In this document: positions 1 through 39,794 of the stretch, one piece after another
Layout: each line of letters starts with the position of its first letter
How positions within the stretch are numbered: the first letter of the stretch is position 1
NCBI GenBank assembly: GCA_003427395.1
Contig: BFEA01000005.1
Span: forward strand, 1,562,839 to 1,626,838
DNA: 64,000 nt
DNA from: Chara braunii
Taxonomy: Eukaryota; Plantae; Charophyceae
Reading direction: 5' to 3'
Program-made: the position numbers and the translations under genes
Notes under the pieces: generated by a model
Seen by the model: the letters and a program-made list of their open reading frames with translations, nothing else
Told to the model about the DNA's origin: nothing
Database searches by the model: none

Positions 1-314
1 CCCCTGCTCCTAGACATCCCCGGCCCCACACCCCGCTCGGCCCCGCCCCCGGCCCCGTGCCCAGGGCCACCCTGGGCTCACCAGGGGACGGTGTAGCCCC
101 AGGGGGGGGTCCAAGGTGGGGCCAAAACTCCATTTTCGCAGTTAGTCCCAGGGGGTGCAGGCTTCCGCTGCGCACCCCCTAGTTTTTTGTATTTTTCATT
201 TTTTTTTTTGATTTTTTTTTTTTTTTAGGGGGGTCCGGAGCCGGGGCTGGTGGTGACCACCTCCCGACCCCCACATCCCCGCCGGGCCCTTGGGGCCGAA
301 GCTCGACAACCCTG
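1..314. mobile_element. Right part of a GC-rich non-autonomous hAT-like element (copy 1 of a tandem duplication)
   Basis: Ends in GACAACCCTG (rc CAGGGTTGTC, hAT-type terminus); near-identical to 2365-2680. Confidence 0.5.
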
Positions 315-1195
315 CTAATGATGGAGGGAGGGGGAGGACAATGATGAAGGAAGGAGGAGATCGATGATGAGGGAGGAGGAGATCAATAGCAAGGGAGGAG
401 GGGGAAGGGAGAAGGGCGGACGGAGGACGACACCGATGATGGAGGGAAGGGGGAGACAACGACGGAGGGAGGAGCAGATCGATGCCGAGGGAGGGAATGA
501 AGGAAGGAGGATGAGATCGATAGCGAGGGAGGCGGGGGAAGGGAGAAGGGCGGAGGGAGGACGACATTGATGATGGAGGGAAGGGGAGGACAACGACGGA
601 GGGAGGAGGAGATCGATGACGAGGGAAGGAATGGAGGAGGGAGGAGGAGATCGATAGCGAGGGAGGAGGGGAAGGGAAGAGGGGGAAGGGAGAAGGGCGG
701 AGGGAGGAAGGCACTGATGATGGAGGGAAGGGGAGGACAACGACGGAGGGAGGAGGAGATCGATGACGAGGGAGGAGGAGATCGATAGTGAGGGAGGAGG
801 GGGAAGGGAGAAGGGCGGACGGAGGACGACACCGATGATGGAGGGAAGGGGAGGACAACGACTCGAGGAGGAGGAGATCGATGACGGGGGAGGGAATGGA
901 GGACGGAGGAGGAGATCGATGGCAAGGGAGGAGGGGGAAGGGAGAAGGGTAGAGGGAGGGTGACACCAATGATGGAGGGAAGGGGAGGACAAGGACGGAG
1001 GGAGGAGGACATCGATGACGAGGGAGGAGGAAATCGATAGCGAGGGAGGAGAGTGAAGGAAGAAGGGCAGAGGGAGGATGACACCGATGATGGAGGGAAG
1101 GGGAGGACGAGGACGAAGGGAGGAGGAGATCGATGACGAGGGAGGAGGAGATCAATAGTAAGGGAGAAGGGCGGAGGGAGGACGACACGGATGAT
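315..1195. repeat. Purine-rich degenerate minisatellite (GAGGGAGGAGGAGATCGATGAC-type units)
   Basis: Recurring GAGGGAGGAGGAGATCGAT and GATGATGGAGGGAAGGGGAGGACAACGAC units; the S/P/L-rich ORFs are artefacts of the repeat. Confidence 0.9.
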
Positions 1196-2680
1196 CGGTG
1201 TTGTCATGAGGGGATCCTCATGGCCCGAGCCAGGGTGGGGGTTTTACCCTCGGACCCTCGTACCCCGGCATCCACGCCCGATCACCACCCCAACCCTGTG
1301 AACCTCGCCCACGGTCCTGCAACCCCACGCCCATCCCCNNNNNNNNNNNNNNNNNNNNNNNNNNNNNNNNNNNNNNNNNNNNNNNNNNNNNNNNNNNNNN
1401 NNNNNNNNNNNNNNNNNNNNNNNNNNNNNNNNNNNNNNNNNNNNNNNNNNNNNNNNNNNNNNNNNNNNNNNNNNNNNNNNNNNNNNNNNNNNNNNNNNNN
1501 NNNNNNNNNNNNNNNNNNNNNNNNNNNNNNNNNNNNNNNNNNNNNNNNNNNNNNNNNNNNNNNNNNNNNNNNNNNNNNNNNNNNNNNNNNNNNNNNNNNN
1601 NNNNNNNNNNNNNNNNNNNNNNNNNNNNNNNNNNNNNNNNNNNNNNNNNNNNNNNNNNNNNNNNNNNNNNNNNNNNNNNNNNNNNNNNNNNNNNNNNNNN
1701 NNNNNNNNNNNNNNNNNNNNNNNNNNNNNNNNNNNNNNNNNNNNNNNNNNNNNNNNNNNNNNNNNNNNNNNNNNNNNNNNNNNNNNNNNNNNNNNNNNNN
1801 NNNNNNNNNNNNNNNNNNNNNNNNNNNNNNNNNNNNNNNNNNNNNNNNNNNNNNNNNNNNNNNNNNNNNNNNNNNNNNNNNNNNNNNNNNNNNNNNNNNN
1901 NNNNNNNNNNNNNNNNNNNNNNNNNNNNNNNNNNNNNNNNNNNNNNNNNNNNNNNNNNNNNNNNNNNNNNNNNNNNNNNNNNNNNNNNNNNNNNNNNNNN
2001 NNNNNNNNNNNNNNNNNNNNNNNNNNNNNNNNNNNNNNNNNNNNNNNNNNNNNNNNNNNNNNNNNNNNNNNNNNNNNNNNNNNNNNNNNNNNNNNNNNNN
2101 NNNNNNNNNNNNNNNNNNNNNNNNNNNNNNNNNNNNNNNNNNNNNNNNNNNNNNNNNNNNNNNNNNNNNNNNNNNNNNNNNNNNNNNNNNNNNNNNNNNN
2201 NNNNNNNNNNNNNNNNNNNNNNNNNNNNNNNNNNNNNNNNNNNNNNNNNNNNNNNNNNNNNNNNNNNNNNNNNNNNNNNNNNNNNNNNNNNNNNNGCTGC
2301 AACATAACCCGCGCAAATGCCACGTGCGGCGCCCTGCACCCCCCCCCCGGGCCTTGCACCCCCGTCCTCGCTCCCAGCCATCCCCGACCCCACTTCCCGC
2401 TCGGCCCCGCACCCGGCCCCGCGCCCAGGGCCACCCCGGGCTCACCAGGGAAAGGTGTAGCCCCGGGGGGGCCCCAAGGTGGGGCCAAAACTGCATTTTC
2501 GCAGTTAGTCCAAGGGGGTGCAGACTTCCTCTACGCCCCCTCAAGTTTTTGTTTTTTTTTTATTTTTTTTTTATTTTTTTTATTTTTTTTTTAGGGGGGT
2601 CTGGAGCCTGGGCCGGGGGTGACCACCGCCCGACCCCCACATCCCCACCGGGGCCTTGGGGCCGAAGCTCGACAACCCTG
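1196..2680. mobile_element. Non-autonomous hAT-like element spanning an N gap, inserted in the GA minisatellite
   Basis: Left CGGTGTTGTC (1196), right GACAACCCTG (2680); flanks CGGATGAT / CTAATGAT resemble a decayed 8-bp TSD. Confidence 0.45.
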
Positions 2681-3765
2681 CTAATGATGGAGGGAGGGGG
2701 AGGACAATGATGAAGGAAGGAGGAGATCGATGACGAGGGAGGAGGAGATCAATAGCGAGGGAGGAGGGGGAAGGGAGAAGGGCGGACGGAGGACTACACC
2801 GATGATGGAGGGAAGGGGAGGACAACGACAGAGGGAGGAGGAAATCGATGCCGAGGGAGGGAATGGAGGAGGGAGGAGGAGATCGATAGCGAGGGAGGCG
2901 GGGGAAGGGAGAAGGGCGGAGGGAGGACACCAATGATGGAGGGAAANNNNNNNNNNNNNNNNNNNNNNNNNNNNNNNNNNNNNNNNNNNNNGATGGAGGG
3001 AAAGGGAGGACAACGACGGAGGGAGGAAGCGATCGATGACGAGGGAGGGAATGGAGGAGGGAGGAGGAGATCGATAGCGAGGGAGGAGGGGGAAGGGAGG
3101 AGAGGGAAGGGAGAAGGGCGGAGGGAGGATGACATCGATGATGGAGGGAAGGGGAGGACAACGAGGGCGGGACGAGGAGATCGATGACGAGGGAGGAGGA
3201 AATTGATGTCGAGAGAGGAAGGGGAAGGGAGAAGGGCGGAGGGAGGACGACACACTTGTGATGGAGGGAAGGGTTGGACAACGACGGAGGGAGGAGCAGA
3301 TCGATGGCCAGGGAGATCGATGACAAGGGAGATCAATGGCGAGGGAGGAGGAGATCGATAGCGAGGGAGGAGGGGGAAGGGAGAAGGGCGGAGGGAGGAT
3401 GACACTGGTGATGGAGGGAAGGGGAGGACAATGACGGAGGGAGGAGGAGAGCGATGACGAGCGACGAGGAAATCAATAGCGAGGATGGAGGGGGAAGGGA
3501 GAAGTGAGGAGGGAGGACGACGCTAATGATGAAGGAGGGAGGGGGAGGACAACGACGGAGGGAGGAGGGAGGGGGAGCAGTGGAGTATGAAAAAAAAAAA
3601 AAAGGAGGACAACATGATGGAGGGAGGGGGACGGCAGCAACAGAGGGAGAAGAAGAAGAAGAAGAAGGGGGGCGGAAGAAGAAAAAGAAGAAGAAGATGG
3701 CGAAGGAGAAAAAGAAGAAGAGGAGAAGAGGAAGAAGGAGAAGAAGGAGAAGAAGAAGAAGAAGC
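2681..3765. repeat. Second block of the GA minisatellite ending in a (GAA)n-like tract
   Basis: Same units as 315-1195, with near-identical sequence following the hAT-like end. Confidence 0.9.
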
Positions 3766-3769
3766 TTCT

Positions 3770-5732
3770 CATTCACCTCCTCTAGTATCTGGAGATGGAG
3801 ATGCCAATCTTGGTGAAGCTACCTCTCTCTGTGCACACTTATTGCCCAACTATGGCGTCCTTCTTCTTCAAGCCTCCTTCCTTCTTCCTTCCTCAGTCTC
3901 TCCCTAGCTATGGCAAGTCTCTACCACTAAGGCTATGGAGTCCTTCCCTCTAGGAGGGCTAAGGAGACCCCTACTAGACTTCCTCTCTCCTTCCTAGCTT
4001 GGGGGGCTATGGCGGATCACTTCTCTAGGCTGGCACAACCTCCACTAGCCTCAATAGCCTCTCCTACTAGCCTACAGCCTCCTCCAAGCTTCCAAGCCGG
4101 CACCGGTTCCCCTCCTCTCACTCCGGTTGAGTGTAGAGCTCTCTTGGGCTCATGCAGGCATCATGTACTTGTCTCATGCAAATGTGAGTGTGGCGGGCTG
4201 CTCCCCCAGCTTACATAGGTTGGGCACAGCACTCCGGCCAGCCCATGGGCCTCTCCATGTGGCCCATGGTGAACCGAGGTACGCCCAAGACCTTTTTTTG
4301 GCCTCTCCGGGAGCACCCGGACCTTTTTTTGGCCAGGTACATGCAGTCCGAGTGGTCGGTACCAACTCGGACAGCCTCTAGAGCCTCCTCATGGCTCATT
4401 TTCCCTTTTAGATGCTGCCCCCGAGGTCCGAATATTCAAGGGGCAGCCTTACTTGAAAGAAAAAGGCCTTACGGACTTTTTTATCGATTTTCTATAATCC
4501 TACCCCAATTTGGGTAGGCCGAGGCATTTTCTTTTGCCTAGGTGCATTCTTAGCCTTGGATCTGGCTGAGATCCAAGACCAACATTAATCCGAGATATCA
4601 CCAAGTGATCCTTGCTTCAGATCTAAGCCCCAAATGTTTTTCTCCCTCTTTTGTTTCTTTCCATTTGGGCTGCCAACTCATTCCGGAGTTGGCGGTTTGA
4701 GCTGGCCCCACAAAAAACGGCCATATCCCCTCCTCCATGGATCTGAATCTCAGATCCATGGCCCAAGAGAAAACCAGCCTATTTCTTTTTGCTTTTTCTC
4801 TCATTTTGGCTTTTTTAATTCAGATATTGTCGAGATAATGCCCAAGGGCCTTATCTCTTCACTCCGGATTTCCCTCCACTAAACCCGGAGTGATGAGGTC
4901 GAGGTCACAGTAGGGACCTGACAGTCCCTATTGTGCCAGTCCCTATTGTGTCAGTCCCAATAGGCCAGCACCTCCTCAAACACTCTTTTCTCCCCCTTTG
5001 TCTCATTCTCCCTTTTTTTTCTCCCCTTTCTCTTTTCTTTTCTTTTATTTCTGCTGTGAGAAGTGTCAAGCAGTTGTGGACTATTTTTCTAGGTCATGGA
5101 TCTTGATCTAGATCCAACAGCTAACCGTTATTTCGCAGATCACAATAATGAAGCCCTTACACTCATGGGAGCTCCATTTTGACTTCGTTAGTCTCAATTT
5201 TTTACCCCGTTTGCCCCGATTTTTCCTTGACGGTCTATTTTTTGCGTACAACTCATTGGGGTTCTATTTTCTCATGCATTGTTAGTTCGAGATATCTCGG
5301 ACTGCAGGGTAGGCCTCCCACCATCATTTCCTCTCTCTTTTTGCCTCCACACTCTTCCTATCTTGGCCCCACTCAATCCCTGCACTAGTGGTTGCTAATA
5401 TTTTCCTTCGTCAAAATCTTTGATCTTGAGGGTGTCACTTGCTTCACGTGTTCATCCTTCATGCGGAGTCCACAGTTTCCCTTGGGACACTCAAGTCCCC
5501 ACCACTCATCCCACACTAGTTTCACTTTGTAGCCTCACCGACAGTCCCGCCAGCACATGTCTCAATTTTCAATTATTTTTATTTGGGTCCATCTAGTCCA
5601 CGACACCATTCCCGATGGTGTTCCATTTTTATTTGGGATTTCTTATTCCGCGACAACCCAATCTCTCCTCCTCATGTGTCTCAAGTGCGTCGATTATTCC
5701 CGGGCACGAGATCCTCGTCTCATAGTTGTCGT
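3770..5732 (-). mobile_element. Repeat family A (probable LTR), copy 1
   Basis: Collinear with 47691-49300 (e.g. GTACATGCAGTCCGAGTGGT, AGATCCAAGACCAACATT) and 16550-16802; the 16550-16802 copy ends GTGTCACA (rc TGTGACAC, LTR-like start). Confidence 0.6.
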
Positions 5733-6123
5733 TGTCGGTGCGAATACCCTTACAAAGGTATCCGCCGTGGTTTTTGCAAATGACAAGAATTAAGCGGTTT
5801 AAGATCTAAGTATATCGCGTGGGTCGCAGCGGTGTCTGTTTGCTTACGCTGGCTGAAGGGTTGACTAGTTTAGAGAGTGTGTGGGCGCAAAAACTTAATT
5901 TAAAAAAAAAAAAAAAAAAAGACGCGCATGATCCTTCTTTCTGTTGATGATTGTAGAGCCGGCGTGGTTATCAACCAAATTATTAGTTCTGATTAAACTA
6001 CGATTAAAAGGTTGTCTGATGATTGAAATGCTTGGGCGCAAGATGTGCGTATGTACGGAGGACGACATTGACAACAGTATGACTTGAAATGTCTTAGAAG
6101 GTCCGTGCGTCACGCAGTACCCG

Positions 6124-6133
6124 CTTATATAGG
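6124..6133 (+). promoter_or_regulatory. TATA-like box in B1, conserved in B2 at ~13540
   Basis: CCGCTTATATAGG in B1 and CCGCTTATATAAG in B2 at the equivalent position ~400 bp from the terminus. Confidence 0.5.
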
Positions 6134-6468
6134 TGTCCGCTAGTATTAGGCTCAACATTGGGCCTAGTGCTATTGGTTACAATGTCGGACTTTCATCCAG
6201 GGGATTAAGGGATTGAGACTAGCGAGCGGCAGCGTAGGAGTATTAATGCAGTTTGAAGAAACTGAGGGGTTGAGGGTCCCGCGAGACTATTCCCCTTGGT
6301 TTTACCATCGGTGCCGACAACAGTCCGGTTGGGGAACAAAGGGGGTGTCACGGTCCCCTCCCCTTCTTTCCCTTGCGGTTCCGATAGCTCGTCATAACCA
6401 TTTTTATAGTTATTATTTTTCGATGATCGCGAAGGAGTCAGCGGGCCTGGCTCGGTTGATACGCCTAT

Positions 6469-6654
6469 GGAACACGGGAGGAGTGGACCGCGGAGTCAAC
6501 GTGTGCCCAGAGAAACTGGGTGGCGTGGGCCATCCGTGTGTGCCCGATCACCAACCGCGAGTATGCTGAGAGAGGTTTGTGAGTGACCCCCGCCGAGACC
6601 CGAGAGATGGCGAGGTGTGCCTGGGCGGAGTGGCCCAGGGCACAATGGCGAAGG
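6469..6654 (+). rRNA. Degenerate LSU (25S) rRNA fragment, domain II 5' part; non-functional, TE-borne
   Basis: GAGACCCGAGAGATGGCGAGGTGTGCCTGGGCGGAG vs consensus GGGACCCGAAAGATGGTGAACTATGCCTGAGCGGGG. Confidence 0.65.
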
Positions 6655-6682
6655 TCGAGGCCACATGTCGCGGGTCACGTCT

Positions 6683-6920
6683 CTCCCCATTTCGGTTTCC
6701 GAAGCTCCCAATTGAAGGTTGCCACTACCACCAAGATCTGCATCGGGACACGTTTTGCCTAGGTTCATCCTGCTGATGATACAGCAGGCCTAGCGTCCTC
6801 CCACTCGCCGTAGCGTCGGGTCCGCAACGGGGTCGAGCACGAGGCGGGGCTATTCTGATTTGGCAGGGGAAGTTATCACCCACGCCTTAGCAGACGTTGG
6901 CTTGAAGGACTAGCGCCCGT
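6683..6920 (-). rRNA. Degenerate LSU rRNA fragment (GTPase-associated centre to LR7 site), antisense to element B1
   Basis: ACTACCACCAAGATCTGCA (6724-6742) matches the LR7 primer region; CGGGGCTATTCTGATTTGGCAGG..CACGCCTTAGCAGA matches rc of the GAC. Confidence 0.85.
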
Positions 6921-7075
6921 AGGAATGAGTATAGAGGCAGGAGGTTACTCGAATCAGTTTAAGTTGCTGCTTTCTTGCTTTGGAAGTTTCCGTCAAGATT
7001 GTGGGAGCCGTTAGTCGGGCCGCTCAACCATTATGATGGACGAAACGATACCGAATGTTGCGCTAACTTCAAGGA

Positions 7076-7200
7076 GAAACCAGGGGCGTTGTGGGGAAGT
7101 TTGCAGCTATACTGGTGCAGCATGTCTGTCGGACCGCGGGTACAGGGGCGGAGGACTAATTGAGCCGCCTAGTAGCTGGCTCCTCAGAAGCTCCCACAGG
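7076..7200 (+). rRNA. Degenerate LSU rRNA fragment ending at the LR5 site
   Basis: GGGTACAGGGGCGGAGGACTAATTGAGCCGCCTAGTAGCTGGCTCC vs GGGTATAGGGGCGAAAGACTAATCGAACCGTCTAGTAGCTGGTTCC. Confidence 0.85.
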
Positions 7201-9834
7201 TTTTGAAGTCGTCGGGTGGGGAGACCAGGAGGAGCGAGCGGACAAGGCGAAGGATGGACGTTGTGAGAGGCGAATGAACCCGTTCACGATATTGCACCGA
7301 GTGCATTTGACAGTGAAGATGGCGGGGAGGTGAGCAGGGCGATCGCGAAGCAAGAGTTCGCAGTTTCACTCGTTTGTCAGTAGAAGTGGGCGGGGGAGAA
7401 TTCCAGACTAAGGTTTCGGGGGCTGGCGAGTCCAGTAGTGATATCAGTTTAGAGGGTAGAGTAGCGTGGAGGGGCCAAGGAGGAGATCGAACTGCGTGAA
7501 GTAGTCGGAGATGGCAGTGAGGAGAAAAGCGTAGATAAGAAGTTGAACGGATCGGTAATTTCTAGATCGATTTTAATCATTCAAAAGGCTTTTTGGAGGG
7601 GTTGATGGCCAACGAGTCGAATGCCGCGGTCAGAATCTGCGATGGCATGGTGAGTTGGTTAGTACGTGAGAACGAAGCCGGGAAAATGTGTCGGGGTGTG
7701 CAGATATGATGGGATTGTAAAAAGGGGATATCAGTTGTCGGTGGATGAAATCAGAGGAAGGGAAAGTGTAGCTGGGGGTTTTCCTATAGGGAGATTCAAA
7801 CGGTAGTGTTAGATTTGGGAGATAAAGGATGAGTCCGAAGATGGATTAGTAAGTAGTTGCGCCTAGGACAAAGTGAGAATGTATCTTTCTGCTTTTTAGC
7901 AGAAGATTCAGTCTCGTTTTGCAAATTCAGTAAGAAACGGAGGAAGCGTGATAGTCTTGCGCTCTGCTCGTTGTTACCTCCATAGGGGATGTGTGCGGCG
8001 CTAGTCGGAGTTGGTGCATCGTTCGTTTTTGTTCACGGTTCGCTCCGGAGCTACTTTGCACCCAATATCTGATGTCCTGCAGCTATGGCAATCATATCCC
8101 CGCATCGGCATTTCCCATCGCTTTGCCATCTGAGGCTGGTCCTTTAAGACTGGGCTCTCCAATCCTGCTCGCTAGGACCTCTGTTGCAATCATAATGTTA
8201 GTAGTTGGGATAGAGTAGGGGAAAAAACACGATTACAGACGAAACGGGGGGGATGAAGGAGTTACTGAGTAGGAGCAGCGTCTGGATGCTCGCTCTGCTC
8301 ATCGATAGTTCAGTTGTTGGCTGCCTCTTTATTTATACCTCTTCGAAGGTACCCGGGCCTGCCTCAAAACGTGTGGGCCTGGGCCAAAACGTGTGGCCCA
8401 GGGAAGCTTCCAGACGTTTGGCCTTCTGGGCCAAAACATGTGGAACCCACAGCGTGGTCCATAACATTCCCCACGTGCAGCCCCTACCCCTTGTACTTGC
8501 TGACTGGACTGGCCTATAGGGACCTACGACCTTCTAGAACCTACAGACTTACAGACAGACTCTAGGCCTCAATAGACTCAGATAGAGGCTTCTAGAATAA
8601 ACCTTCCTAAGCCTAACGGTAACAAACGTAACTCCTAATCTACAGACCTGGGGATCGAGTCTCACACAAATCGTTGGGCCTTTGTACAGGGTACAGGGTA
8701 GGTCTAGGGATCAAATCTCACTCAGCACACATGGTCAATGTACAGGGTTTGGGCACAGGTCTAGGAATCGAATCTCTGTGTCTGCAAATGTCGGGTCTAC
8801 TGGGTGAAACCGTTTCAGGAGGATTCAAGTGAGATGTAATATAAGGGTTTATTCTCCATACACTTACAATTTAGTTTTTTGAATTGACCTTTGATGTGTT
8901 ACAGATCCTTTTTGGACATTTCAATTCAAGATCTGATTAGTTTCAGTCTGATCCTACAAGGATCATCTTCTGTTACCTTTTGATAACAGGTGAGTTGCCA
9001 AGTCTCGCTACTCAACCTAAAGGTCTAAGCTCCTGTGGGTTGAGTTGTTTCTTTGGGGTTTTACCCGGACTTTCGTTAAATAACCATTTAAAAAGTACTG
9101 AGTATATTATTCGGAAGGTTGGACAAAGGTTGAGGCTTTTGTGGATAAGGCAAGGGGTATGAGTGCAAAGAGTGGTTGGAGTTGACCCCGTGTAGTGTGT
9201 GGTTTGCCGATGTTGGATCCTTGATGTGGTTGCAGGTATGTTTGTGAGTGGGAGTTCAAATTTGCCTTTGCTTGCAATTATAAGTATACTTTGAAGGGAG
9301 TCACGCTATAATTGTGAGGGTGATTGTCTCGTTGTATGTTGCGTTCGCGCGGTCTACCAAAGGTCGCGCGCAACAATCGAATAGATCGGTACCGAGAGAA
9401 AAACCCTGTGCTTCTTAGAATTTGTTTAGTTGGACGTTAAGGTCCGTGACGACTATCAAAGTCAAACCTCTTGACCTGTTTTCAGACCCTGGATGATGGA
9501 ACCTCACTTTAAGTGTTAGGGTCATTCAACCGCCACAAAAGGCCAAGGCCCGCCTACCTGCGCAGGGTGCAAAAAAGGGTAGGACTCGCAATCGCCGTAG
9601 CGATTGTCTAGCGTCGAGAGATTAACCCCTCAAGGGCCTCAAGTCAATACTGGAAGGGTGATGGTCCTGAGTGCTGGTCACACTGAAGTAGGATAGTTGG
9701 GGCAAGGGGTGCGCTGGGAGTATTAACGTGGGGATGGGTAGGGTAGGTGGCCTATCCTGTCAGGACAACCATTGGTTGCTGTTACCAGCAATCACCGCGG
9801 GTCTGGTCCTTGGCCTCTACAACACCTTGGGCTT

Positions 9835-11696: not shown

Positions 11697-13863
11697 ATGA
11701 AATCAGACTCACCTTCTTCTCACTTCGCATACATGCAAACAGATGGGAAAGCACACTGGCGCCAGGCGCCCACTCAAAGCTCAGAGATATTCAAGCCGAG
11801 AACACAGTTCGGATACAAACTCGCTCCAATTGGCTATGGCGCCCAGGCGCCCACACTTCATTTCCCAACTCTGTATTTACGGCAGCTGTTTACACATACT
11901 CAACTGGATCTCCCTAAATACCCCACGCACACACACGCACACACTCACTCTCACTACCACCTATCGCTAGCTAAGCAGCGATGGCTGCTCTAACTCCGTT
12001 TCAACCCGCTTCGACTTCGGCCATTTGCAGACCACCTCGCAGAAGACGCTAGGGCAGCGCTTCCGCGTGGCTCACACAGTGTGACAGACCCGCCGGGATG
12101 CTGGTCCGTAAGGATCGAGACGAAGGGTTGAAGGGGGAGGAGATGCATATGGAGTTGGAAGGGACAGCGCAGCTTCAAGGCGGACTCAACACGCACGTAC
12201 TCCAAAAGTGCAGAATGAAGAATCCAAAAAATAGACTGCAGTTGGGGTATACCCCCAGTGGATTGACTGGACTGGACTGGACTGACCTAGTACCGACAGT
12301 GGTACCGGGCAGGACTGGACTGGACCGAAACAACACACGGCTTATGGGGTCAGGCCACGGCCTACTCCCACAGGCCGCACAGGCTAATAGTCGAATAGGC
12401 CCTGGCTATAGGCCAGGGCAGATAGAGGTTCGTTGCACGATCCTCAGACCTGTAGTGGATCGCAAAAGTCATAAACACGCTATCCGCAGAAGCAGCGGAA
12501 CTCTGTAATAAAGAAAGCTGAGAAATCGAGGATGCAGAGCAAGCTCCATGGGGAGTCCATGCGATGTAGCCTAAGCTACATAATGTCAAATGAAAAGCAA
12601 ATGTTTGGTATACACATGCTAACTAACAACAGAAAATGAAATGTAGCATGATACAATCCTAAAGTCCTGGAGGCAATTGCCTCAGTGCTCAAAGGAAAAG
12701 AGCAATATGACACAAGTAATGTCATTTCGTTGAAGCACTAAGAATGGATGGTCTCAGAGTGGGTGAATGTAGCCTGAGAATCGAAACTCTTACGGGCAAT
12801 CACACACGAAGGTGGGATAGGTCATCAGGCTCAAGATGGGAGAGTGGTAGCGAAACAAAACCAATGACCCTAACAGATAGACCATCAAGGCAAGTAATGC
12901 TCGACATAAGGGTGACACCATGCAGGGTCGACCATGGAAAAGGGGAGTCTGGAATAGGGTGGAGATATGCCTAACTGAAGGCATGCAAGAGCCGACACTA
13001 GGGTGACGAGGGCAGTGGGTAAGGGAAACATGCACACAACTCACTGACTGGGGAGGGAGCTAGATCTGGGAGCAAGGAAGCCAAGATAACGTTGTCGGTG
13101 CGAATGCCCTTACAAGGGTATCCGCCCTAGTTTTTGCAAGCGACAAAAAATAAGTTTGGTTTTAAGTTTACGTATACCGCGCGAGGCGCGACTATGTCTG
13201 TGGTTTACGATGATTGAATGGTTGACTAGAGTAGAGAGTGTGTGGGCGCGCAGACTGAAGGGGCGCATGGTCTCTCTTCTTATTGATGACTGTGAAGTCG
13301 GCGTTGGTTGCCGACGAAGATTTTATTTTCTGATTAAACTAGGATTAAAAAAAAATTGTTTTTTGATTGGTGCGCTTGCCTTGTGACCTGTGCGTACGTA
13401 CGGAGGATGACGTCGACGAAGGCACAGTTTTGTATAGCCGCGCTTTGGGCGTGGAAGGTTCAGTGGGCGTGGGATTAGTTGGTAGACCGAGACATGGCTC
13501 TCGGACGTTTCAGTAGACCGGTGCGCCACGGTGTATCCGCTTATATAAGCTACCACCTAGGCTAGAACCAGCCTTGGGTCTAGCATTATTGGTTACGGTA
13601 TCGGACTTTAAACTAGAGGATTCAGAGGTCGAGACCGACCAGCGATAGCAAAGAAGCATTGGAGCGGCGTCAAGGAGTCGTGGGGTCGAGGGCTCGGCGA
13701 GGTTATCCCCCATGGTTTTGTTGTAGCGGGGCCGGGGTCCTTTCCTCGCCTTGTGGTTTATTTCTATTTCCCGTGAGTATTATTTATTTAATATTATTAA
13801 TTATTATTGTTATTCATGTATGTTACCTTATTGTTATTCATGTATGTTACCTTTTTGTCGGGC

Positions 13864-14063
13864 GCAGCACCGGAACCGAGGAATTCAACGAGCATGCGAG
13901 CCGGTGAAGTGATTAGCCCACGAGGCGAAAGAAAACCTGAGTAGCGGGGGCCTTTGGTAGGCACACTGGCCGCCGCTCACTATTTGTTGTGAGAGATTTG
14001 AGAGTGAATGCGTCGTTATGCCTTAGGAAGTGGCAAGTTGTGCCTGGGCAGGGTAGCCTAGAG
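13864..14063 (+). rRNA. Degenerate LSU rRNA fragment (from the LR3 region onward)
   Basis: CGGAACCGAGGAATTCAACGAGCATGCGAG..CCCACGAGGCGAAAGAAAACCTGA..TGTGCCTGGGCAGGGTAGCCTAGAG is collinear with consensus. Confidence 0.65.
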
Positions 14064-14100
14064 CGCATAAGCAGGGACCGCAGGCGAGTGCCACAGCCAG

Positions 14101-14197
14101 TCACGGAGCCTTCTCCACTTCGGTCTTCAAAGTTCTCATTTGAATATATGTTGCTGCCATTAAGATCTGCACCACGCCCACGCCACCAAGGCTCACG
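14101..14197 (-). rRNA. Degenerate LSU rRNA fragment (LR7 region), antisense to B2
   Basis: CCTTCTCCACTTCGGTCTTCAAAGTTCTCATTTGAATAT..AAGATCTGCACC is the rc of GGTGCAGATCTT..ATATTCAAATGAGAACTTTGAAGACCGAAGTGGAGAAGG. Confidence 0.92.
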
Positions 14198-14211
14198 TTA
14201 TAAGTTGCAAT

Positions 14212-14440
14212 GGGGCCACGCCCCCACCCGACCTTGTTACCTGTTGTGAGAAAAAGGTGAGAACACGCCCGTTGGGAACACCAAAGGTGGTGAGCTCCGC
14301 CTGAGCGGAGCGGGCAAGAGGAAATTCTAGTAGAGACTCGCGACGATACTGATGTGCAAAACGTTCGTCGGACGGGTATTGGGGCGAGAGACTGCTCGAA
14401 CTGCTTAGGAGCTGGTTTCGTCAAAAGTCGCCCGCAGAGC
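14212..14440 (+). rRNA. Degenerate LSU rRNA fragment, domain II to LR5 site
   Basis: AAAGGTGGTGAGCTCCGCCTGAGCGG..AGAGGAAATTCTAGTAGAG..CGATACTGATGTGCAAAACGTTCGTCGGAC..GGGGCGAGAGACT matches consensus. Confidence 0.9.
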
Positions 14441-16549
14441 GGCCAAACCGGTTGTGCATACTGAGCTGCACTGATTGTTGATGGGTGAAGGGCGGGTGGA
14501 GCGCTAGGCTGGAGATGACGAGTACGGTATGAAGGGGAGGAATGCGGAGACAGCAGTCAGGAGAGACTCAGATGAATCGGACCTGGATCTGTGCCAGGTG
14601 CATCCGGACCAAAAGTCGAAGATGGAAATGGCGGAGAAGAGAGGGTGACGGGGCAGGAAGTGCCTAGCGTCCCCAATCCTTAACGAATTTCAGCAAACTA
14701 AGAGCCGAATCCGAGTCTTTTGGCCGGGGCGAGCCCGATTACGAGGTCAGTTTTAGTGAAAACTTAGTAAAAAAAAAGTTAGTAAGAAAACGAGCCGCGC
14801 GAGAGATGGCGGGACCAGCGAGGAAGGAGAATGAGAAATGCGTATCTCCCTCGTTTCCGAACGGAATTGGGCGAGGGAGGGCTCTAATCGGGCATTTTTG
14901 GGCAGGTGACCTCAATTCTGAGGGTGAAATTAGTAAGAGGGTAGTAGAAAAAGGCTTAGTTGAGAAATGTATTGCGCAAGAGTGTCGAGGAGAGTGGAGA
15001 TGGTGGGTTAGAAGTTAGTCGGTTCTTCAAACTTTCTAACGGAATCAGGCGAGGGGAGTAGCGTTTGGGGGTTTCATTGATAAGCGGGTCCGAAAGTGAG
15101 GTCGGGTTTTAGAGTAAGTGGCTGGTCTTAACAACATGACTTGTTTGATTGTCCGTTGCGTAGTAGAAGGAGAAATAAAAGAAATGTATCTTCCCGTGTT
15201 TTGTTGGGAAGATTCATTTCCGATCTGTGGATTTCGGGACAGTCGAGCTGATCTTTGTAGAAGTAACGATCTTGTTTCCTTTGTTGATTGTTCGTGAGTT
15301 TGTCCTTACTCGATGCACGACGCGCAATCTCCTCCGGCTAGGTAGTCATCCTTCGTAGCTGAAGAGCTTGACATCTTGATGACCTTCGACATTGTGATTT
15401 GTAGTAGTTGTCATATTTCGTAGGATAATGTTTATTCGTATGATGGGTTTTAAAACATAACCAGATTCAATGAGGACTGAATTTGGACAGAGGTGAGAAG
15501 AAAGAAAGAAAAGGGGGGATGAACCTACCCGTAGTCCTGAGGGAGGTTAATTTGATTTTGCTCATTTGGTCAATGGCAGCGGGATGAGGCCAGCCGCAAG
15601 CTTGGAGACTTACCTGATGCCCGGAGTGTTGCCAGTCTGATGACCGAAGAAGTGAAGTGGGAGGTTACAAACTTGCTACCTGTGAGGGCCGGTGGGTTCA
15701 AGGAGGAGCACAAAGCTGGATGACGGCGTATTTTTTCATACTCCAGTGGTAGATTCTCCTGATTTGTTTTGCCGATGGAAGTAACATGAAGCCGACCATG
15801 AGATGGAAGACTTACTTGGGGGATGATGCGTTGTGCCTTCCACCCTCAGTCCTGGCATCCGCTTGCTGCACCAGTTGCTCCGTCGTTTGTTGCAGCTCCC
15901 CTCCCCCCTGTGTCATCAGGAGTTGCCCAACCAGTTGTGACCATTATTGCGATTAGGAGACCGACCGGGTGCATTGGGAAGCGGGGAGGAATGAGAACAG
16001 CAAAAAAGAGGGAGTGAGCAGTGAGGCTGAAGACCTACCTGCTCCCTGGTACGCTGCACATCCGCCACAAGAAATAGTGGCAGATTAGCCGCGAGACTGA
16101 AGACTAACCCGTTGGCCAATGCACTGCCTATTGTACCAAGCGAGGCGGCTGATGGCAGGCCGTGAGATGCAAGCTTGTTTGCTGACCGATACACCTTTCA
16201 TCCTTTGGGTTGAAGTATCGCGAGTCCAACCGATGGGTTTTGCATTTGGGGGGGGGGATTATTGTTGCGATTTGAAGGGTCGTTAGGGAGTCAACAACTG
16301 GCGGTTTGAGTACAGTTGACCAAGCTGTTGCGCATTCCTGACCATCATTGCGGGCCCCTCGGGTGCATGGAGATATGAAGGCCCTCTCCTGCGAGTTGAG
16401 TCAGTCCCTCTCTTGTATCTTGAGCGTCTCAAACCCCTTATCTTCTGCTCTTCTTACTCTAAGTCTAATCCTCTTCAGAGAGGAAGGCGGCCAGCGGAAT
16501 TGCAACCCGTAGGATCGCATCAAGACTCTATGGGGAGTCTGCCTATCGA

Positions 16550-16802
16550 TTGGGACACTTAAGTCCCCGCCACTCATTCCGTATTATCTCTACTCTCTTG
16601 TCCCGCCGGTAGTCCCACTGACATATGTCCCAATTTTCGATTATTTTTATTTGGGTGCATCTAGCCCCCGACATCATTCCCGACGGTGTCTCATTTTTAT
16701 TTGAGAGTTTTCTTGGTCCATGGCAGCCCAATCCCCCCTTTCCATGCGTCTCGAGTGTGCCGATTATTCTCGGTGGCGAGATCCTCATCTCCTGGTGTCA
16801 CA
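16550..16802 (-). mobile_element. Family A terminal fragment
   Basis: Homologous to 5484-5730; terminus GTGTCACA. Confidence 0.7.
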
Positions 16803-22814: not shown

Positions 22815-23930
22815 ATCACCCTCCCCCCTTCAAAGAGGACCAAACGGACTACCCCTGATGGGTACTCGTGTCCGATGGCAAGGAGGGGGCTTATGACCTC
22901 CCACAAGGGGTGATGAACCTCCTATCGACGTGGCCGCAGGTGCTCCCATTTTGGAGTCTTACGACACAGTACTTAACAGTTGTGTCTGTTGTAAATAGTA
23001 TTCGAAGGGCCGATCAGCCCAGGCCGCCCATTTGCAATGGAGGTTAAAAAACGATCCATTCTTCCCCCGCGGAATGAAAGGCAAACAAAATTCGAAAGGC
23101 AACTAATAATATTAACAATAATAATAATCCTAATCCGACCCCTTAAGCAGCACTGGCCGCGGGGGGGAGGTCGATGGTCCGCTGCGCGTTGGAATTGGGG
23201 CGAAGTTTCGATGTGGGTCAGCGGATGAAGGCGATCGAGGGCGGGTGAGCGTGCAGAGTGGCGAGCGTACCGAATTGTTCAGAGTGCGCTACTAAACGAG
23301 AGAGTGCGCCCAGGGGGCCGAGTACACGGCGGGCGTCGATGCGGATGAATATCTCGACGCGCCCGCCGTCGGATAGCATTTTCGTTTTGGTTTGTGTCCT
23401 TCCCCTTTTTTGTTTTTTTTGTTTCGTATTCTAGAAAAAAAAAAAAGAATTTGTTGTTTTGTTTCGTATTGTTGTTTTTTATTTATTTTATTTCTATTTA
23501 TTCTTTTTTTAATTATATTTTTCATTCTGGCGTGTCGTTTTGTTTCCTTTTTTTGCCTTCTGTTTTCAACTTTTCGTTTTGTTTCCCGGAAAAGAAAGAC
23601 TTTCCGTTTTTTGTTTTTTTTTTGAATTTGCACTTTTTTACGTCGTCCAAAAAAACAAAAAAAAAAAAGACAAAAGAAGAAACAAAAGACAAAAAAGACA
23701 CATTTTTTTTGCAATTTTTTTTGGGTTGGAACGAACTTTCCGCTAGAACACGACCAGATGCAGGCACACTACTGTTTGGCGCTCGGTCTGCGGTGTGGGC
23801 GGTCCGTGGGCATTGCCACACCACTGTCGAAATGTGAGAAAACGTGGCGGGCGCATCTGGCAATGTTCTAGTGGGAAGTTCATTCTCATTTTGCACATTT
23901 CGGGTGTGGTGTGGTGATGCCCTCTTTATG

Positions 23931-23999
<69 letters not shown>

Positions 24000-24006
24000 T
24001 ACACAC

Positions 24007-24043
<37 letters not shown>
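23931..24043. repeat. Compound (CT)n(CA)n microsatellite
   Basis: Seen directly. Confidence 0.97.
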
Positions 24044-24045
<2 letters not shown>

Positions 24046-24329
24046 TGGGATGAAGTTTGTCTGTCTGTCTGTGTGTGTGCGTGTACGTCAGAGAGAGCAA
24101 GCGAGCAAGAGTCTGTGTGTGTGTGCACGTGCGTGGGTGTACGCCACAAACTGGGTTTGTTCTCAAAGCCCAGGCCTCAACATGTGCATAGGCCCGGAGT
24201 AGGCCCGGAGCCTTTTCCTTGATTTTTTTTTATTTTTTTTTTTTCAAGCCCAAACCTGGACCCGTACGTAGGCCCTAACTGGCCCTGAATCCTGGGTGTT
24301 AGGTCCAAGCCTAAGCCGCTGCCGGGGCC

Positions 24330-24782
24330 CAGACAGACAGGCAGGCTGACAGGCAGAAATGCACACAGATATATGTACAGGCAGGCAAGGAAACAGGCAT
24401 GCAGACAGGTCGACAGACTGACAGACAGGTAGACAGGTAGACGCAGAGACAGACAGACGGACAAACAAATTGTCTGTCTGTCCGTCTGTTTGTCTGTCGG
24501 TCTATATGTTTGTCCGTCTATCTGTTTTTCTGTTTGCATGTCTGCCTGCCTGCCCGTATGCCAGGTTGAACAGACAAGCAAACAGGCAGACTTGGGAAGA
24601 CAGACAAGTGTGCAGGCAGGCAGGGAGACAGCCATGCAGACAGGCACACAGACAGGCACACAGACAGACTCAGAAAGACATGCAAACAGGCAGACAAGCA
24701 CACAGACAGGCACACAGATAGGTGTTTGCTTGGGCCTGGTCATGAGACTGATCATGGGGCTTGGCAGGCAGGCAAGCAGGCC
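24330..24782. repeat. Degenerate (CAGA/CAGG)n tetranucleotide array with an inverted central block
   Basis: CAGA/CAGG runs flanking a TCTG-rich block at 24470-24555. Confidence 0.9.
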
Positions 24783-27071
24783 CAGGTTAGGGAGACAAGG
24801 TCCGGAAGACAACGCAGGTCGGGAACACAAGCTCGGCACACCATGTATTGTAATGAATATTGGAGAAGGAACGAATCCGATAAGGGGGAATAAAGTTGGC
24901 AATAAACGTAACCTCTCTCCCAAAGCACCCATGCTATCCCAAACGACCTCCTTTTACGTAACCCCGTTCCAAGAAGTCATATTCTCTACCCCCTTTGCTC
25001 CTATCTCATCAAAGTCGCCCAAGCAAAAGAGGAGAGGAATAGTGAGGTCATCAACGGTTTGACCGACCTCGATCGCTAGGAATGACTCTTCCTGGAACCA
25101 CGACCTTCGAGGCTGGCTGGGGAGAGGGCGGTACGCCGCATAGCCCCATTTATGGAGGTGGTGCAATATTATCGTGGAGGAGCCAACGCCTACTTCTGAG
25201 ATCCGGGCCTCGTGCCTGAGCAAGGAGAACAGGTACCATGGACTACATCATAGCAGTCGGGACTCAGATAGGCTGGGGAAAATATTTTACCTTCTTTGAA
25301 TTCTTTGTGGACGGATGACTGACTTAGAATACCCAAGGCTGGCCGCAAGTAGGAGTCGCCTCGATCAAGGTCGATTGGAGCCAAAAGAAGTTTCGATCCC
25401 AATGAGAAACTTATACGAACAAGAAAGTGAGCCCTGTCGTGCAACGACAAAGGGTAAACGTGGACAAATGAGGTACGTATGACTCTATCCCATGGGGCCC
25501 TGAAAAGACTAAGGGGCGTATAGGACCACAAATCAAACATACGGAAGAAAAATTATCGTTTTTTTTAACAACGCATAGCAAACAAAGTGTGACACGCCTT
25601 GATTAATTAACACATAAATCCGATGTCAATTGAATGTTCGCACAAACATGCAACTTGATCGTTACATTTATATCTACATTAACAAATACGTTCCGGTGTC
25701 AATTAATTAACCTTCAATTCCCTCGACATGAGCATTAAAAAGAAAAAAACATAAACTGATCCTTTTGTTCTCTTTCTCTTTTCGCTTGGTGTTGTGACAA
25801 CTTTGTTTATGCTTGGAATACTTTTTTTTTTTTTTTTTTTTTTTTTTACTTGACGCTATATCCTTGTTCTTATTATGATAATTACATCTATATATATGCA
25901 TGTTCTAAGATATATTTTATTCATCCCGATTTTCTATATGTATCGCATTCCTCATATCATTTAATTTATATGTTATAGTCATGTAACAATACATACACAC
26001 ACGCCCGTTCATATGGCAGGGACGAAGGTGTACGTGAGGGTTCAACCAATAGTAATTTATCTACCGTTCCAAACTCCTTTTCATCTGGGGATAGGTCCTT
26101 GCATGTTCCGTGGAAGCGTCGCAAACACCTTCAGCGTTATGAAGGACTTGTTATCGATCCTTTATTGTTTTCTGCAACGATACAAGAGTGTGATCAATCT
26201 CTTGCCATTGATTCTGGTCAAGTCGGTTTCTCTTCGTTACACCATGTTTCTTTTTCGTCGAACGATGCATTGGGATTGCATATAGGTTTAAATATTACTC
26301 CCTGTCGCTCTACGACTGAAACTCGGATGTCATCACAACACGAACACCGCAAACGTGGACGACCACCTTTCCAGAGTCGTCGAAGTCGAATGTCTTTAGT
26401 ACAAGCGATAGGTGCTGAGGGTGATGAGACTGTTCGCATGAGAGATAAACAACCAATGGTAACTCAAGATCGTGACCCTGATTGTTGTATCGAAAAACAA
26501 TGTAGTTAGGGTTAGGTCTTTATCTTTTCGACAACCAATTCCGTTGGTGGATGATATCGCAAGCCCTGTGTTCTTTAATCAAAGGAGTCAAGGAAATGTT
26601 GATGTTTGTACCGGTCTGATTAGTTGCCATCGAAATATCTCTATGACCTTGCAAAGTGCACGCCCTGTTGAAATTGGTACGGATATTGCAGTACACATAA
26701 ATTATGTTCTGATGGTCGAACGAATCTTTTTAATCGATAGTTTTCCTTTCCATTCGCCACGTGTACACGATGGTTCGTCATCGAGGTTCATAGAGGATGT
26801 CCGACAAAGATGTGTGGAGCCTAACCTTTGTCCTCCCGTGACAACTGTTCATGCACGGTCATGCTCTTCTACCATGACCCTACCAAATCCGCCGAAAGCA
26901 ATGGTTAGAAAGTTTGTTGGATTTCATAATCGTCGGAGGAGATTATTATTATTGAAACCGATTCATTCAAGACGTAACAGACAGTATCGTATGTTGCGCC
27001 TTTGAGAACTACGTGCCGCTAAAGTCGTGCGTCGTTTGGAACTTGGATCGTTGTTGTCGATGCCTTAGCGT

Positions 27072-30000
27072 GTGTTGCCCGACTTTGATGTAAATACGAT
27101 AATTGTTGAAAGTACTGTGGACGTTGGTGGTGGAACGGAACAAGTCGATACGATGAATTCCAATGAACCAGGTTCTACATCACGTAGAATTTCAACCCGA
27201 AAGAAAAGTCAGGAGAGAAAGACGAACTTTCATGTTAAACATATGCGTGCATTGAGAGTTGTGATTAACAATTGTAAGTGGAAAAAAAATGTGTATGCTC
27301 ATAAATATTTTGTGCGGGGTGTGAAGCGAAATTTGCTTGCTATGAATGTCCTTCGAGAGATTCGAGCGACTGCCTCTGGGCAGTCGAGAAGTGCATCTTC
27401 AACTTCGAAAGAAACGTGTAGTCATTGTTACCGGCCGAGGCAATCACGGAGTCTATCATCGAGAGCAAGACAATCACATAATCCATCCGTTACAATTCGA
27501 AATGTAATGAACAATCGTGAACATCGTGGGCCGAATAGCCGCGATGAGGAAATGAATGATTCGCATGATGCTCCGCCTGCTGATGTGAATGCACTCCCAT
27601 TTGCACCCGTCGCACCATATGTAGCGTTTGAGAACACTGTGACAATTCTTGGGAATGCTACCACGGTTGAGGCGTTCGACATTGGTGGTCGACAACCATG
27701 TAACTATTGCGGTGCTAAATTAAGGCATCACGAAAAAAATTGACAAAGATATGCGGCAGAAAAGGTGCGAGACGTTGTCCTCTGTGGGAGTGACATTACG
27801 AAGGGTCTCCGAAGCATGAGATTCTTTTCATTTGGACGTCTTAGGTTCCTGACGGCCGATTCGTTCGAAACAATGCAAGGATAATCAATAGTAATTTATC
27901 TCTCGGATCCTCACGGTTGAAGCAACTAAGCGATGGTTCGTTCGAAACAATGCAAGGATAATCAATAATAGTTTATCCCTCCCATCCTCACTGTTGAAGC
28001 AACCGAGCGATGGTGTTCAAGGATTCCAGGGCCAACTTCAGGCTCAAGGTCCGATCTATCATCGTGTTGGTGCATTGGTTGTGGAGGAAGGGGAACGTCC
28101 TCAGTTTGCATAACTTTACTTGCACGATCCTCAACATTTGCATGATGCGATTGATTAAAGAGTAAATTTTCTTAATTTACTTACACATATGTTTAATGCC
28201 GAACTGAAGCGAATGAAACAAATATTGAGAAGGTTCCACGAATTGCTACAACGTTGTAACAATTACGTGAGGGGCTTTATGACGATTGTTGACCTACCGC
28301 CCGAAGCGTTAAACGGGAGGAAGTTGGTCATAAGTCCAGAAACCATCACAAATGGTTAACGGGGACCTTCATTTTCAAGCCCTTGGTAACGAGTCAAAAA
28401 CTGAAATTAGGGTGTCGGGGTCAAATTTTAAGTTTTTTTGTTTGTTTTTTTTTTTTGCCTTTCTTGTTTTGGTTCAAGGTTAGTGTGTGCCAAATTTTGT
28501 GTCATTTGGAGAACTGGAATTTCCTCTGTTAAGATTTCTAAAATTTCTCAAGATTTCTAAAATTGAGATGTTAGCGAAATGTCATGAAAATGCGTTTTTG
28601 CCTTTCTGTTTTATATGTTTTTTATTTTTTTATTTTTTATTTTGTTTTGCAGTTAGTTAGTATGGTCTCCACTCTACAATTTGGTGACAAGTTTGATTAA
28701 AATGACCCTTTGGTTTTCATATAAATGGTATGACAAGTGGTCTGAAAATTAGGGTCTCCGTTAACCTTATCTCGAAGTCATGCCTGCGGAGGAATATAGA
28801 AGGTGTTATAACCGTCCTACGGGTCTGCAGGAGGTGTGTGTTCTCATGGTCGATGACCTTCTTCCTCGTGAGCTCGAGATTCGTTTGCGTGCTCCTCTTC
28901 GGGGTGAGTGGCAAACAGATGTGGTTCTAGAATGTTCCCGAACACATGACTGCTTGAGGTTTGTTTTGTTTTTCATGAAGGGAATTTGATAGTTGGTCTG
29001 CCTTGCGTGCCGCAGAAGCTCGATGGCAGCCAGAACTTAGTGCCAAGAAGTACTATACATTTCACCTTCACGAATGCGATGGTGAAAGACCTTGCCTCCT
29101 TTATGCAGCACGTCGTTTCCACGAGTTTTGTTGCATGACGTACACTGAGGTTGAATCCCTTCCTTAAAATTAGTAAGATTCCATCAGAAAGATTTTTTGT
29201 CGGAGTATTATCAGGATTTAGGAGATGTCGTTGAACAAAATCAACGTGGTGACGATGTTGGGACAAAAGTGGTTTTACCGTCAACACTGGGGTGCCCCGA
29301 TAAATGAGTGAAGGATGTCATGACAAAATGGCAATCGTGAGGCGATTCGGAAAACCGGGTTTTTTCATCACTATGAGCAACACTAACTGGTTGGAGATGA
29401 AACAAACCCTGTTTCCAGGTCAATGCCCTAACGACAGGTCGGATCTTCTAGCGAGAGTGTTCAAAGGTTATTGTGCACAACTCATCAATGGGATAAAGAA
29501 CAAACGGATATTTGGTAGGGTGAATGAAATGTTGTATGTTGTGGAGTTTCAAAAAAAGGATCTATCACATGCACATATATTGGTTATCTTGCATGCGTAT
29601 GATAAACTTCGGGATACGGATGCTGTTGACAATGTGGTGTGTGTCGCGATTCCTCCGAAAGGGGAATTGAGAGAAAGGGTTGCCAAGTTCATGTTGCACG
29701 CGATTTATAGTGCGGAGAAATGCGAGGCTTCGTGCACGGAGGACGAAGAATGGACAAAACAGTTCCCAAAAGACTTCATTTCGACAATAACATTCAAAGA
29801 CGAGCAAACGTAGGCTTCGTATAGAATAAGGAACCAAGTGATGGTGGTTTTACGACTGCTCAGAATAGTATCGTTTACGATAATCGTCGTGTGGTCCCGT
29901 ATAACCCTTACTTGCTGATGAGGTTTAATTGCCACTTAAATGTTGAATATTGTGCTAACATCAAGGCGTGCACGTACGTGTATAAGTACGTATACAAAGG

Positions 30001-32360: not shown

Positions 32361-32429
32361 CTTGTTAAAAAAAAAAAAAAAAAAAAATTGAGCCTTCGCA
32401 TTCCGATTAATTTTATCATTTTCTTTCTT

Positions 32430-37624: not shown

Positions 37625-37830
37625 CAGAAATCGATAGGCCGTACTCACATAATTTGTACTCATATTTGAACACAAACTCATAAGAGTCTTTGCTCTTTTT
37701 CTCCCTACGAGGTCTCTGTTCTCGTTGAGCTTATCATAGAACCGCTCCGTTATCTCTTACTCATATGTGCTGCCTAAGCCAAACTCCTCAGCTAACAAAA
37801 ATCAGATGAGCTTTTGTCCTTTGTGCCCAA
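37625..37830 (-). rRNA. Degenerate LSU rRNA fragment, domain V
   Basis: ATCGATAGGCC..TCTGTTCTCGTTGAGCTTATCATAG..CGTTATCTCTTAC..ATGTGCTGCCTAAGCCAAACTCC is the rc of GGAGTTTGGCTGGGGCGGCACAT..GAGCTCAACGAGAACAGA..GGCCTATCGAT. Confidence 0.9.
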
Positions 37831-37861
37831 GCTCGACAAATGATAGGCACTTCAACATCAC

Positions 37862-39680: not shown

Positions 39681-39780
39681 AAAACTCAGACCATTTCTTG
39701 ATTTATGCATGTCATCCTTGCGTAGGGGTCATGCTAATCTTCTCTATATCGTTCCAATTTTAACGGATGTCCCGAAGGAC
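39681..39780 (-). ncRNA. U6: Full-length U6 snRNA copy, probably a pseudogene (ACAGAGA box mutated to ATAGAGA)
   Basis: rc GTCCTTCGGGACATCCGTTAAAATTGGAACGATATAGAGAAGATTAGCATGACCCCTACGCAAGGATGACATGCATAAATCAAGAAATGGTCTGAGTTTT matches plant U6; followed by oligo-T. Confidence 0.95.
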
Positions 39781-39794
39781 AAAATCTGGTCTAG

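Follow-up and report, generated by a model that had tools for sequence, protein, structure and literature searches.

Small nonautonomous LTR retrotransposons of the Cassandra, Helenus, and Ajax ("TRIMp3") types have LTRs that contain sequence derived from 5S rRNA or from tRNA (PMC10886601, PMC7215508). They are miniature elements in which a whole Pol III gene lies in the sense orientation, and its internal promoter is thought to drive them. Host structural RNAs also enter chimeric retrocopies, including the U6/L1, 5S/L1, and 28S/L1 chimeras of mammals (PMC11838501, PMC4476161) and the bipartite and tripartite chimeras of Magnaporthe (PMC2104539), which are ascribed to template jumping by reverse transcriptase (RT). 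Complete U6 and large-subunit (LSU) rRNA pieces of 50 to 480 nucleotides (nt), fused end to end, are products of template jumping (PMC2104539, PMC4476161, PMC11838501), and antisense pieces occur in the chimeras made by LINE RTs (PMC11838501). Such chimeras are single, dead-end insertions with a LINE 3′ part, poly(A), and long duplications. A 28S-derived SINE exemplifies the SINEs of rRNA origin (cited in PMC11838501), and retroviral particles package U6 and other abundant host noncoding RNAs (PMC4997597, PMC4752605).

Here, we analyzed a 64,000-nt stretch of the Chara braunii genome (referred to as the window), in which four copies (B1 to B4) of a repeat, B, contain fragments of LSU rRNA. Like Cassandra, Helenus, and Ajax, B has host structural-RNA sequence in a putative LTR, inherited and amplified with the element. 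Unlike them, it is 3.5 to 4.5 kb long, and its LSU fragments are Pol I made, promoterless, present in both orientations, and freely decaying; B is not miniature, nor does it hold a complete 5S or tRNA-like gene. Across the whole window, Rfam found no 5S rRNA and ARAGORN found no tRNA genes. The donors of the B family, full-length U6 and LSU pieces in sense and antisense, resemble those of the LINE-RT chimeras. In contrast to the latter, the B mosaic lies inside a repeat that later amplified, and because it has no LINE part and no A-tail after the last block in any copy, B is not a LINE-mediated chimera of the U6/L1 type. All RT domains in the window are of the Gypsy type. As in rRNA-derived SINEs, LSU-derived sequence multiplies within a mobile element; those SINEs are short, LINE dependent, and built on a single sense piece, whereas B is a long, LTR-like mosaic. 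Packaging of host RNA by retroviruses places abundant RNAs beside a template-switching RT and offers a ready uptake route, although B, unlike anything in those papers, would hold stable rRNA pieces within the LTR itself. By analogy, the closest parallel to B is probably uptake in the manner of retroviruses, with packaged host RNA being fixed in a repeat and then amplified. A literature search, which was not exhaustive, yielded no account of an LTR with sense and antisense LSU pieces in mosaic. The mosaic in B is genuine and somewhat out of the ordinary, and the best explanation for it is neutral cargo of a decayed LTR-like family, not a new biological system.

Copies of repeat B and their LSU-derived cassette

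The copies were delimited by self-comparison of the window and by nhmmer searches with a B2/B3 profile. B1 (5730 to 7933, forward strand) is truncated after about 2.2 kb and was recovered as two nhmmer matches, at 5730 to 6424 (E = 5e-102) and 6509 to 7933 (E = 1e-39). B2, found by both approaches, occupies 13090 to 16796 on the same strand. B3, the longest copy at about 4.5 kb, runs on the reverse strand from 47695 to 43221; nhmmer matched 47695 to 43642, and homology to B4 carried the copy onward to 43221. B4 (approximately 36730 to 39935, reverse strand) was placed by Rfam, nhmmer, and self-comparison and is a rearranged, strongly diverged relative of the others, with a tail at 37140 to 36937 and an end module at 36894 to 36730. 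The coordinates given for B1 to B3 in the initial annotation mark the cassettes described below and not the whole copies.

A terminus shared by three diverged copies had been proposed for this locus, and we found it to be well supported. The head motif TGTCGGTGCGAATACCC is common to B1 (5733, +), B2 (13093, +, with 1 mismatch), and B3 (47690, −); these three matches compare with 0.13 expected in the window, and no shuffle out of 100 gave as many. Homology among the copies begins at this head, and the flanks preceding the three heads show no relationship to one another, indicating separate insertions. About 390 bases from the head lies a predicted TATA-like box (6125 to 6132 in B1, 13541 to 13548 in B2, and 47311 to 47304 in B3), which is aligned and conserved in the three-way alignment. 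The 3′ ends are unlike: the last 265 bases of B2 (16530 to 16796) form a module, T, that is common to a second repeat, ST, and not to B3 or B4, which share a different module. No open reading frame matching Pfam was present in any B copy, and a protein search for further copies with the open reading frame spanning the B2 head returned no matches. For the layout of B1 and B2 relative to B4 and B3, tandem or circular permutation and a large inverted duplication were considered as candidate models. In addition, a near-perfect 8-bp inverted repeat, ATACCCTT..AAGGGTAT, stands about 15 bases from the head in B1 to B3 (5749 to 5770, 13109 to 13130, and 47674 to 47653).

Three matches to the Rfam model LSU_rRNA_eukarya were obtained in the window: 46343 to 46514 (+), antisense to B3 (107.7 bits, E = 1e-24, model positions 1175 to 1351); 14283 to 14411 (+) in B2 (68.8 bits, E = 5e-14, model positions 819 to 950); and 37605 to 37811 in B4 (50.2 bits, E = 7e-9). 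Even at permissive thresholds, Rfam recovered one LSU block each in B2 and B3 and none in B1, where no match appeared at E = 10. Since the model was blind to B1 and to most blocks, a purpose-built LSU profile was needed. It was made from 39 eukaryotic LSU sequences on metagenome contigs, fetched via a conserved 18-mer that is present in the window; a scan of viral contigs for an LSU reference gave partial LSU only. The metagenomic loci serve as anonymous references, and LSU positions are given below in the coordinates of one of them, L004, which correspond roughly to the Rfam model position plus 3620. In B2, 39 bases inside the antisense block (14109 to 14147) were masked in later scripts and left out of later searches. 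With E values down to 2e-57 for the new profile, besides the Rfam matches at 1e-24 and 5e-14, the LSU origin claimed for the cassette was borne out.

The B2 cassette (13875 to 14437, +) was resolved with Rfam and nhmmer into a sense block at 13875 to 14007 (L004 4307 to 4420, E = 2e-4 to 3e-3), an antisense block at 14103 to 14215 (5131 down to 5017, E = 1e-19), and a second sense block at 14215 to 14431, reaching 14437 (4374 to 4591, E = 1e-23). For the B1 cassette (6469 to 7215, +), nhmmer with the LSU profile and blastn were used. Its first sense block, the start of which had been put at 6469, was matched at 6562 to 6626 (4398 to 4463) with a marginal E of 0.007 to 0.11; the antisense block lies at 6684 to 6892 (5121 down to 4887, E = 3e-11), with a weak extension to 6918 (4861); and the last sense block was found by the profile at 7095 to 7199 (4490 to 4597, E = 5e-8) and by blastn at 4466 to 4617, so that it is given as 7073 to 7215, ending at the LR5 site. 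In the B3 cassette (46205 to 46866, −; Rfam 107.7 bits, nhmmer E = 2e-57), the first block was seen via B2 homology alone (13872 to 13949 against 46866 to 46792, 76% identity). The antisense block that follows at 46657 to 46353, counted from 46668 (5119 down to 4806, E = 2e-57), includes the GTPase-associated center, and the last sense block was matched at 46293 to 46251 (4522 to 4564, E = 2e-6), by blastn at 46327 to 46232 (4487 to 4587), and read on to about 46205.

Of the sense-antisense-sense order reported in the initial annotation, the antisense-sense pair is thus solid in B1 to B3, whereas solid evidence for the leading sense block comes from B2 alone, the block being marginal in B1 and indirect in B3. 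Two other parts of that description agreed with our results: the last sense block reaches the LR5 site in every copy when block ends are read directly, and the cassette sits 0.7 to 1.5 kb inside the repeat, downstream of the TATA-like box. The LR7 primer site is legible in antisense in B1, at about 6721 to 6745. The LSU inserts are 40 to 320 nt long in both orientations, and the two sense blocks overlap, such that L004 positions 4374 to 4463 occur twice. Together, the LSU fragments in the window cover model positions 610 to 1510 and 2425 to 2809. They are fragments only, scrambled in order and strand, and do not amount to a functional LSU gene or rDNA unit, which would be full length and collinear with a conserved core.

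U6 in the fourth copy and divergence among copies

Read on its own strand, B4 contains the last LSU block, U6, and then two further LSU pieces, all in the sense orientation. The first LSU piece (39899 to 39794, L004 4483 to 4589) has a decayed continuation to the LR5 site. It is followed by a full-length U6 at 39780 to 39680 (−), from its first base to the T-run (Rfam, 92.4 bits). About 1.5 kb beyond U6, a piece of LSU domain II (38196 to 37824, L004 4265 to 4538) is joined to a piece of domain V (37797 to 37620, L004 6213 to 6389), with no more than about 26 bases between them. This domain II-domain V join was captured separately from the B1 to B3 cassette, as a second event. The apparent 14-base spacer between the first LSU piece and U6 reads as the decayed LSU continuation to the LR5 site, and there is no real spacer.

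The break points of the cassette fall into two groups. On the outside, the start of the antisense block falls at L004 5121 (B1), 5131 (B2), and 5119 (B3), and the last sense block stops near 4590 to 4617 in B1 to B4. On the inside, the antisense block ends at 4887 in B1 (4861 with the weak extension), 5017 in B2, and 4806 in B3, and the following sense block starts at 4466, 4374, and 4487, respectively. Since outer break points are common and inner ones are copy specific, we reasoned that there was one ancestral mosaic, in which copy-specific deletions arose later: the antisense block of B2 lacks about 210 nt, and the start of the last block is missing from B1 and B3. The common outer break points also imply that the capture predates the separation of the copies, in line with the earlier suggestion that the cassette is older than copy divergence within a dispersed repeat family.

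We then considered how well the rRNA-derived blocks were kept. Among 715 LSU columns conserved at ≥90% in the 39 eukaryotic references, 139 (19%) were changed in the copies, with a transition-to-transversion ratio of 100:39. At conserved columns, the copies match the LSU consensus at 68 to 86% (76 to 86% in the two solid blocks), and the identity of copy to copy over all aligned columns (53 to 68%) is below this. Derived changes shared between copies do not exceed the number expected if the copies had changed independently. Pairwise identities in the alignment of the three copies mostly lie at 65 to 85% (range, 52 to 85%) over the first 700 columns and are 29 to 72% in the cassette and 28 to 65% beyond it. 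The rRNA blocks therefore decay no more slowly than their surroundings, which is the conservation half of the pattern that the initial annotation had associated with neutral ancestral capture. The loss of 19% of conserved positions, the chance level of shared changes, conservation below that of the first 700 bases, and the copy-specific deletions together lead us to read the cassette as neutral cargo. A caution is that dead copies are expected to decay whatever the cassette did in an active master, and that the sample is four copies.

Origin of the mosaic

Our preferred reading is that B is an old, noncoding repeat, several kilobases long and interspersed in the Chara braunii genome, and most likely a retrotransposon LTR that is present here as solo or fragmentary LTRs. 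A master copy gained pieces of host nuclear LSU rRNA about 0.3 to 1.1 kb past the TATA-like box before the copies in the window arose. These pieces comprised a sense segment at about LSU model positions 670 to 840, an antisense segment at about 1510 down to 1185, and a sense segment at about 755 to 995 ending at LR5. In the sister lineage represented by B4, the last piece was kept, a full U6 was added directly behind it, and two more sense LSU pieces came to lie downstream. Uptake most likely proceeded by copy choice of the element's RT onto abundant, copackaged host RNAs: a jump in minus-strand synthesis would give a sense insert, and one occurring while the plus strand was made would give an antisense insert. 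After amplification, the copies decayed independently as unconstrained DNA. The uptake was recurrent and mostly in sense and included a complete U6 with its T-run, all of which is consistent with RT template jumping. The antisense block is not the product of simple minus-strand template switching, and no junction signature distinguishes RT-mediated from DNA-level capture. Overall, we hold it probable that the cassette is neutral cargo marking descent, with RT template switching as its most likely route and an LTR as the most likely identity of B.

Capture at the DNA level by the master copy, to which an rDNA unit or an rRNA pseudogene would have contributed the pieces, is an unlikely alternative. 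The pieces could have come as filler at a break, by insertion into and recombination with a dispersed rDNA fragment, or as a LINE-made rRNA retropseudogene that entered the LTR later, with local inversions and duplications occurring afterwards. Rearrangement of this kind easily yields the mixed orientation and the overlapping sense blocks; fixed outer and variable inner ends suit an ancestral inverted repeat whose center was deleted independently; and the window is heavily rearranged, half of a Gypsy element being inverted, for example. Weighing against DNA-level capture, the cassette is not bordered by poly(A), a LINE tail, or a duplication, the complete U6 of B4 (nucleotide 1 to T-run) begins precisely where an LSU piece ends, and the all-sense domain II-domain V join bears the signature of RNA-templated jumping. 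Far less credible to us is the functional interpretation of the initial annotation, namely, that the cassette is a transcribed-leader module kept by selection in active masters, which might serve as an rRNA mimic against silencing or as a ribosome, nucleolus, or packaging signal. It can draw on the fixed place of the cassette downstream of a conserved TATA-like box in B1 to B3 and on the retention of at least the last block in the related B4 lineage. Against it stand blocks conserved no better than their flanks and less well than the first 700 bases, the loss of 19% of universally conserved positions, the many pairs broken in the Rfam alignments, the large deletions that remove a different part from each copy, and the replacement of most of the cassette in B4. 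B2 words were also nearly absent from 17 small Chara braunii Logan-contig runs, most of them guessed to be RNA, which is weak evidence against abundant B2 transcripts. Judged on its sequence, the cassette in these copies is no rRNA mimic under selection. Equally improbable is a broader version, in which several Chara braunii LTR lineages would repeatedly recruit LSU and U6 into the transcribed part of giant LTRs to the benefit of the active element, for instance, in packaging, in nuclear or nucleolar routing, or in escape from small-RNA silencing, the decayed copies being relics of functional leaders.

The identity of the repeat itself is a separate matter. B might be another nonautonomous element or a composite, such as a Helitron relative or a mosaic of nested insertions with rDNA debris, which we regard as improbable, somewhat more so than DNA-level capture. 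This alternative is suggested by the presence of an autonomous Helitron in the window, Helitrons being known to carry host fragments in both orientations, by the interchangeable 3′ modules of B (T versus the B3/B4 module), by the ST elements adjoining two B heads, and by the failure to find an LTR pair in the window. Yet B lacks the hallmarks of Helitrons (5′ TC, 3′ CTRR with a subterminal hairpin, and A/T insertion), with no TC at its head and no CTRR with a nearby hairpin at its tails; its ends look like those of a TG..CA insertion that has a 4-bp target site duplication; and the Helitron is nested in another insertion, X, and is not joined to B.

If RT-mediated uptake into an LTR is the correct reading, the window would be a natural record of an LTR-type element that took in and amplified host rRNA and U6. 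The Cassandra/Helenus theme would then be widened from small Pol III genes to large-rRNA fragments and that of U6/28S chimeras from LINEs to LTR-type elements. It would also account for scattered "rRNA" or "U6" matches in the Chara genome, which might otherwise be taken for genes, relics of rDNA, or contamination, and the shared break points would serve well to trace the genealogy of these giant repeats.

Termini and surroundings of repeat B

We put the probability that B is an LTR at a little over one half. The LTR-like nature ascribed to it by the initial annotation is plausible from the termini: the head of B1 to B3 starts with TGTCGG, B3/B4 homology ends at GATTTGCGA(C), in which the final CA is not intact, and both resemble the termini of X (TGTCGG...GCGACA). 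B heads read CG(T/A)TGTCGG, and tails read ...TCTCA or ...GCGA(C). CG plus one base precedes all B heads and both X copies, and it is target DNA in X. No target site duplication was legible at any B copy, and no matching flanks were found at B2 or B3; with copies 25 to 40% diverged, loss of the duplication is expected. A purine-rich run lies directly before B2, and B1 and B2 are in direct orientation 5 kb apart. Within the 64-kb window, no gag-pol, primer binding site (PBS), coding remnant, or polypurine tract (PPT) is flanked by a pair of B copies. With no gag-pol between or next to the B copies there, we treat B as a putative LTR.

Several candidate partners and boundaries of B were rejected. 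The Gypsy family seen at two other Chara loci, L120 and L121, carries no B-like or LSU-like sequence at either locus, and its 3′ LTR starts with TGTTAC after a G-rich PPT. A PBS (TGG) behind module T proved, in B2, to be the inverted end of X. A second B head after the B2 module T gave alignment scores of 9 to 19 against a shuffle mean of 11; the one raised score (19; shuffle maximum, 15) aligned an internal stretch and not the head terminus.

The window is a nest of transposons, with two Gypsy elements, a PIF/Harbinger transposase, and the autonomous Helitron. X is a 6.2-kb TG..CA sequence that starts with TGTCGGAGGG and ends with GTGCGACA. In L121 (1820 to 8066), it stands between two CCGC copies, and the 5′ region of the window Gypsy (53170) has CCGC once. 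This comparison of a filled and an empty site proves X to be an insertion with a 4-bp target duplication. The window copy (16794 to about 36250, reverse strand, outer end approximate), recognized by inverted collinear matches to L121 2001 to 8067, adjoins the 3′ end of B2 and separates B2 from B4. Nested in it is the Helitron (26000 to 34000, +), with Helitron_like_N at 29304 to 29813 and a PIF1 helicase at 31001 to 31513. The repeat ST is present as ST1 (4224 to 5723, +), which shares with the end of B2 the module T that forms its last 265 bases, and as its homologue ST2 (47682 to 49384, +), the two being about 60% identical. ST1 adjoins the B1 head in direct orientation, with 10 bases between, and ST2 adjoins the B3 head in inverted orientation without a gap.

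Dozens of Chara braunii proteins share 84 to 90% identity with the RT of the first Gypsy element and all others share far less, so that the host is Chara braunii or a very near relative; an exact-protein look-up of the window RT gave no match. In a split Gypsy element (50970 to 53174 and 53449 to 56291), the part from gag through protease to the start of RT is inverted beside the RT-RNase H-integrase part, and a 100-base RT piece is present on both sides (50970 to 51069 against 53553 to 53449, 91%). Directly after the Gypsy integrase comes a PIF/Harbinger-type DDE transposase (DDE_Tnp_4, Plant_tran; 56369 to 57353, +). Positions 1 to 3568 consist of tandem repeats that are rich in purines and strongly skewed in GC and AT, with a register of about 120 bp and units 70 to 88% identical, and they bear long spurious open reading frames on both strands. 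Palindromic low-complexity repeats at 23900 to 24700 gave subthreshold matches to microRNA models and to metagenomic rDNA spacer repeats, which most likely reflect chance similarity between simple sequences.
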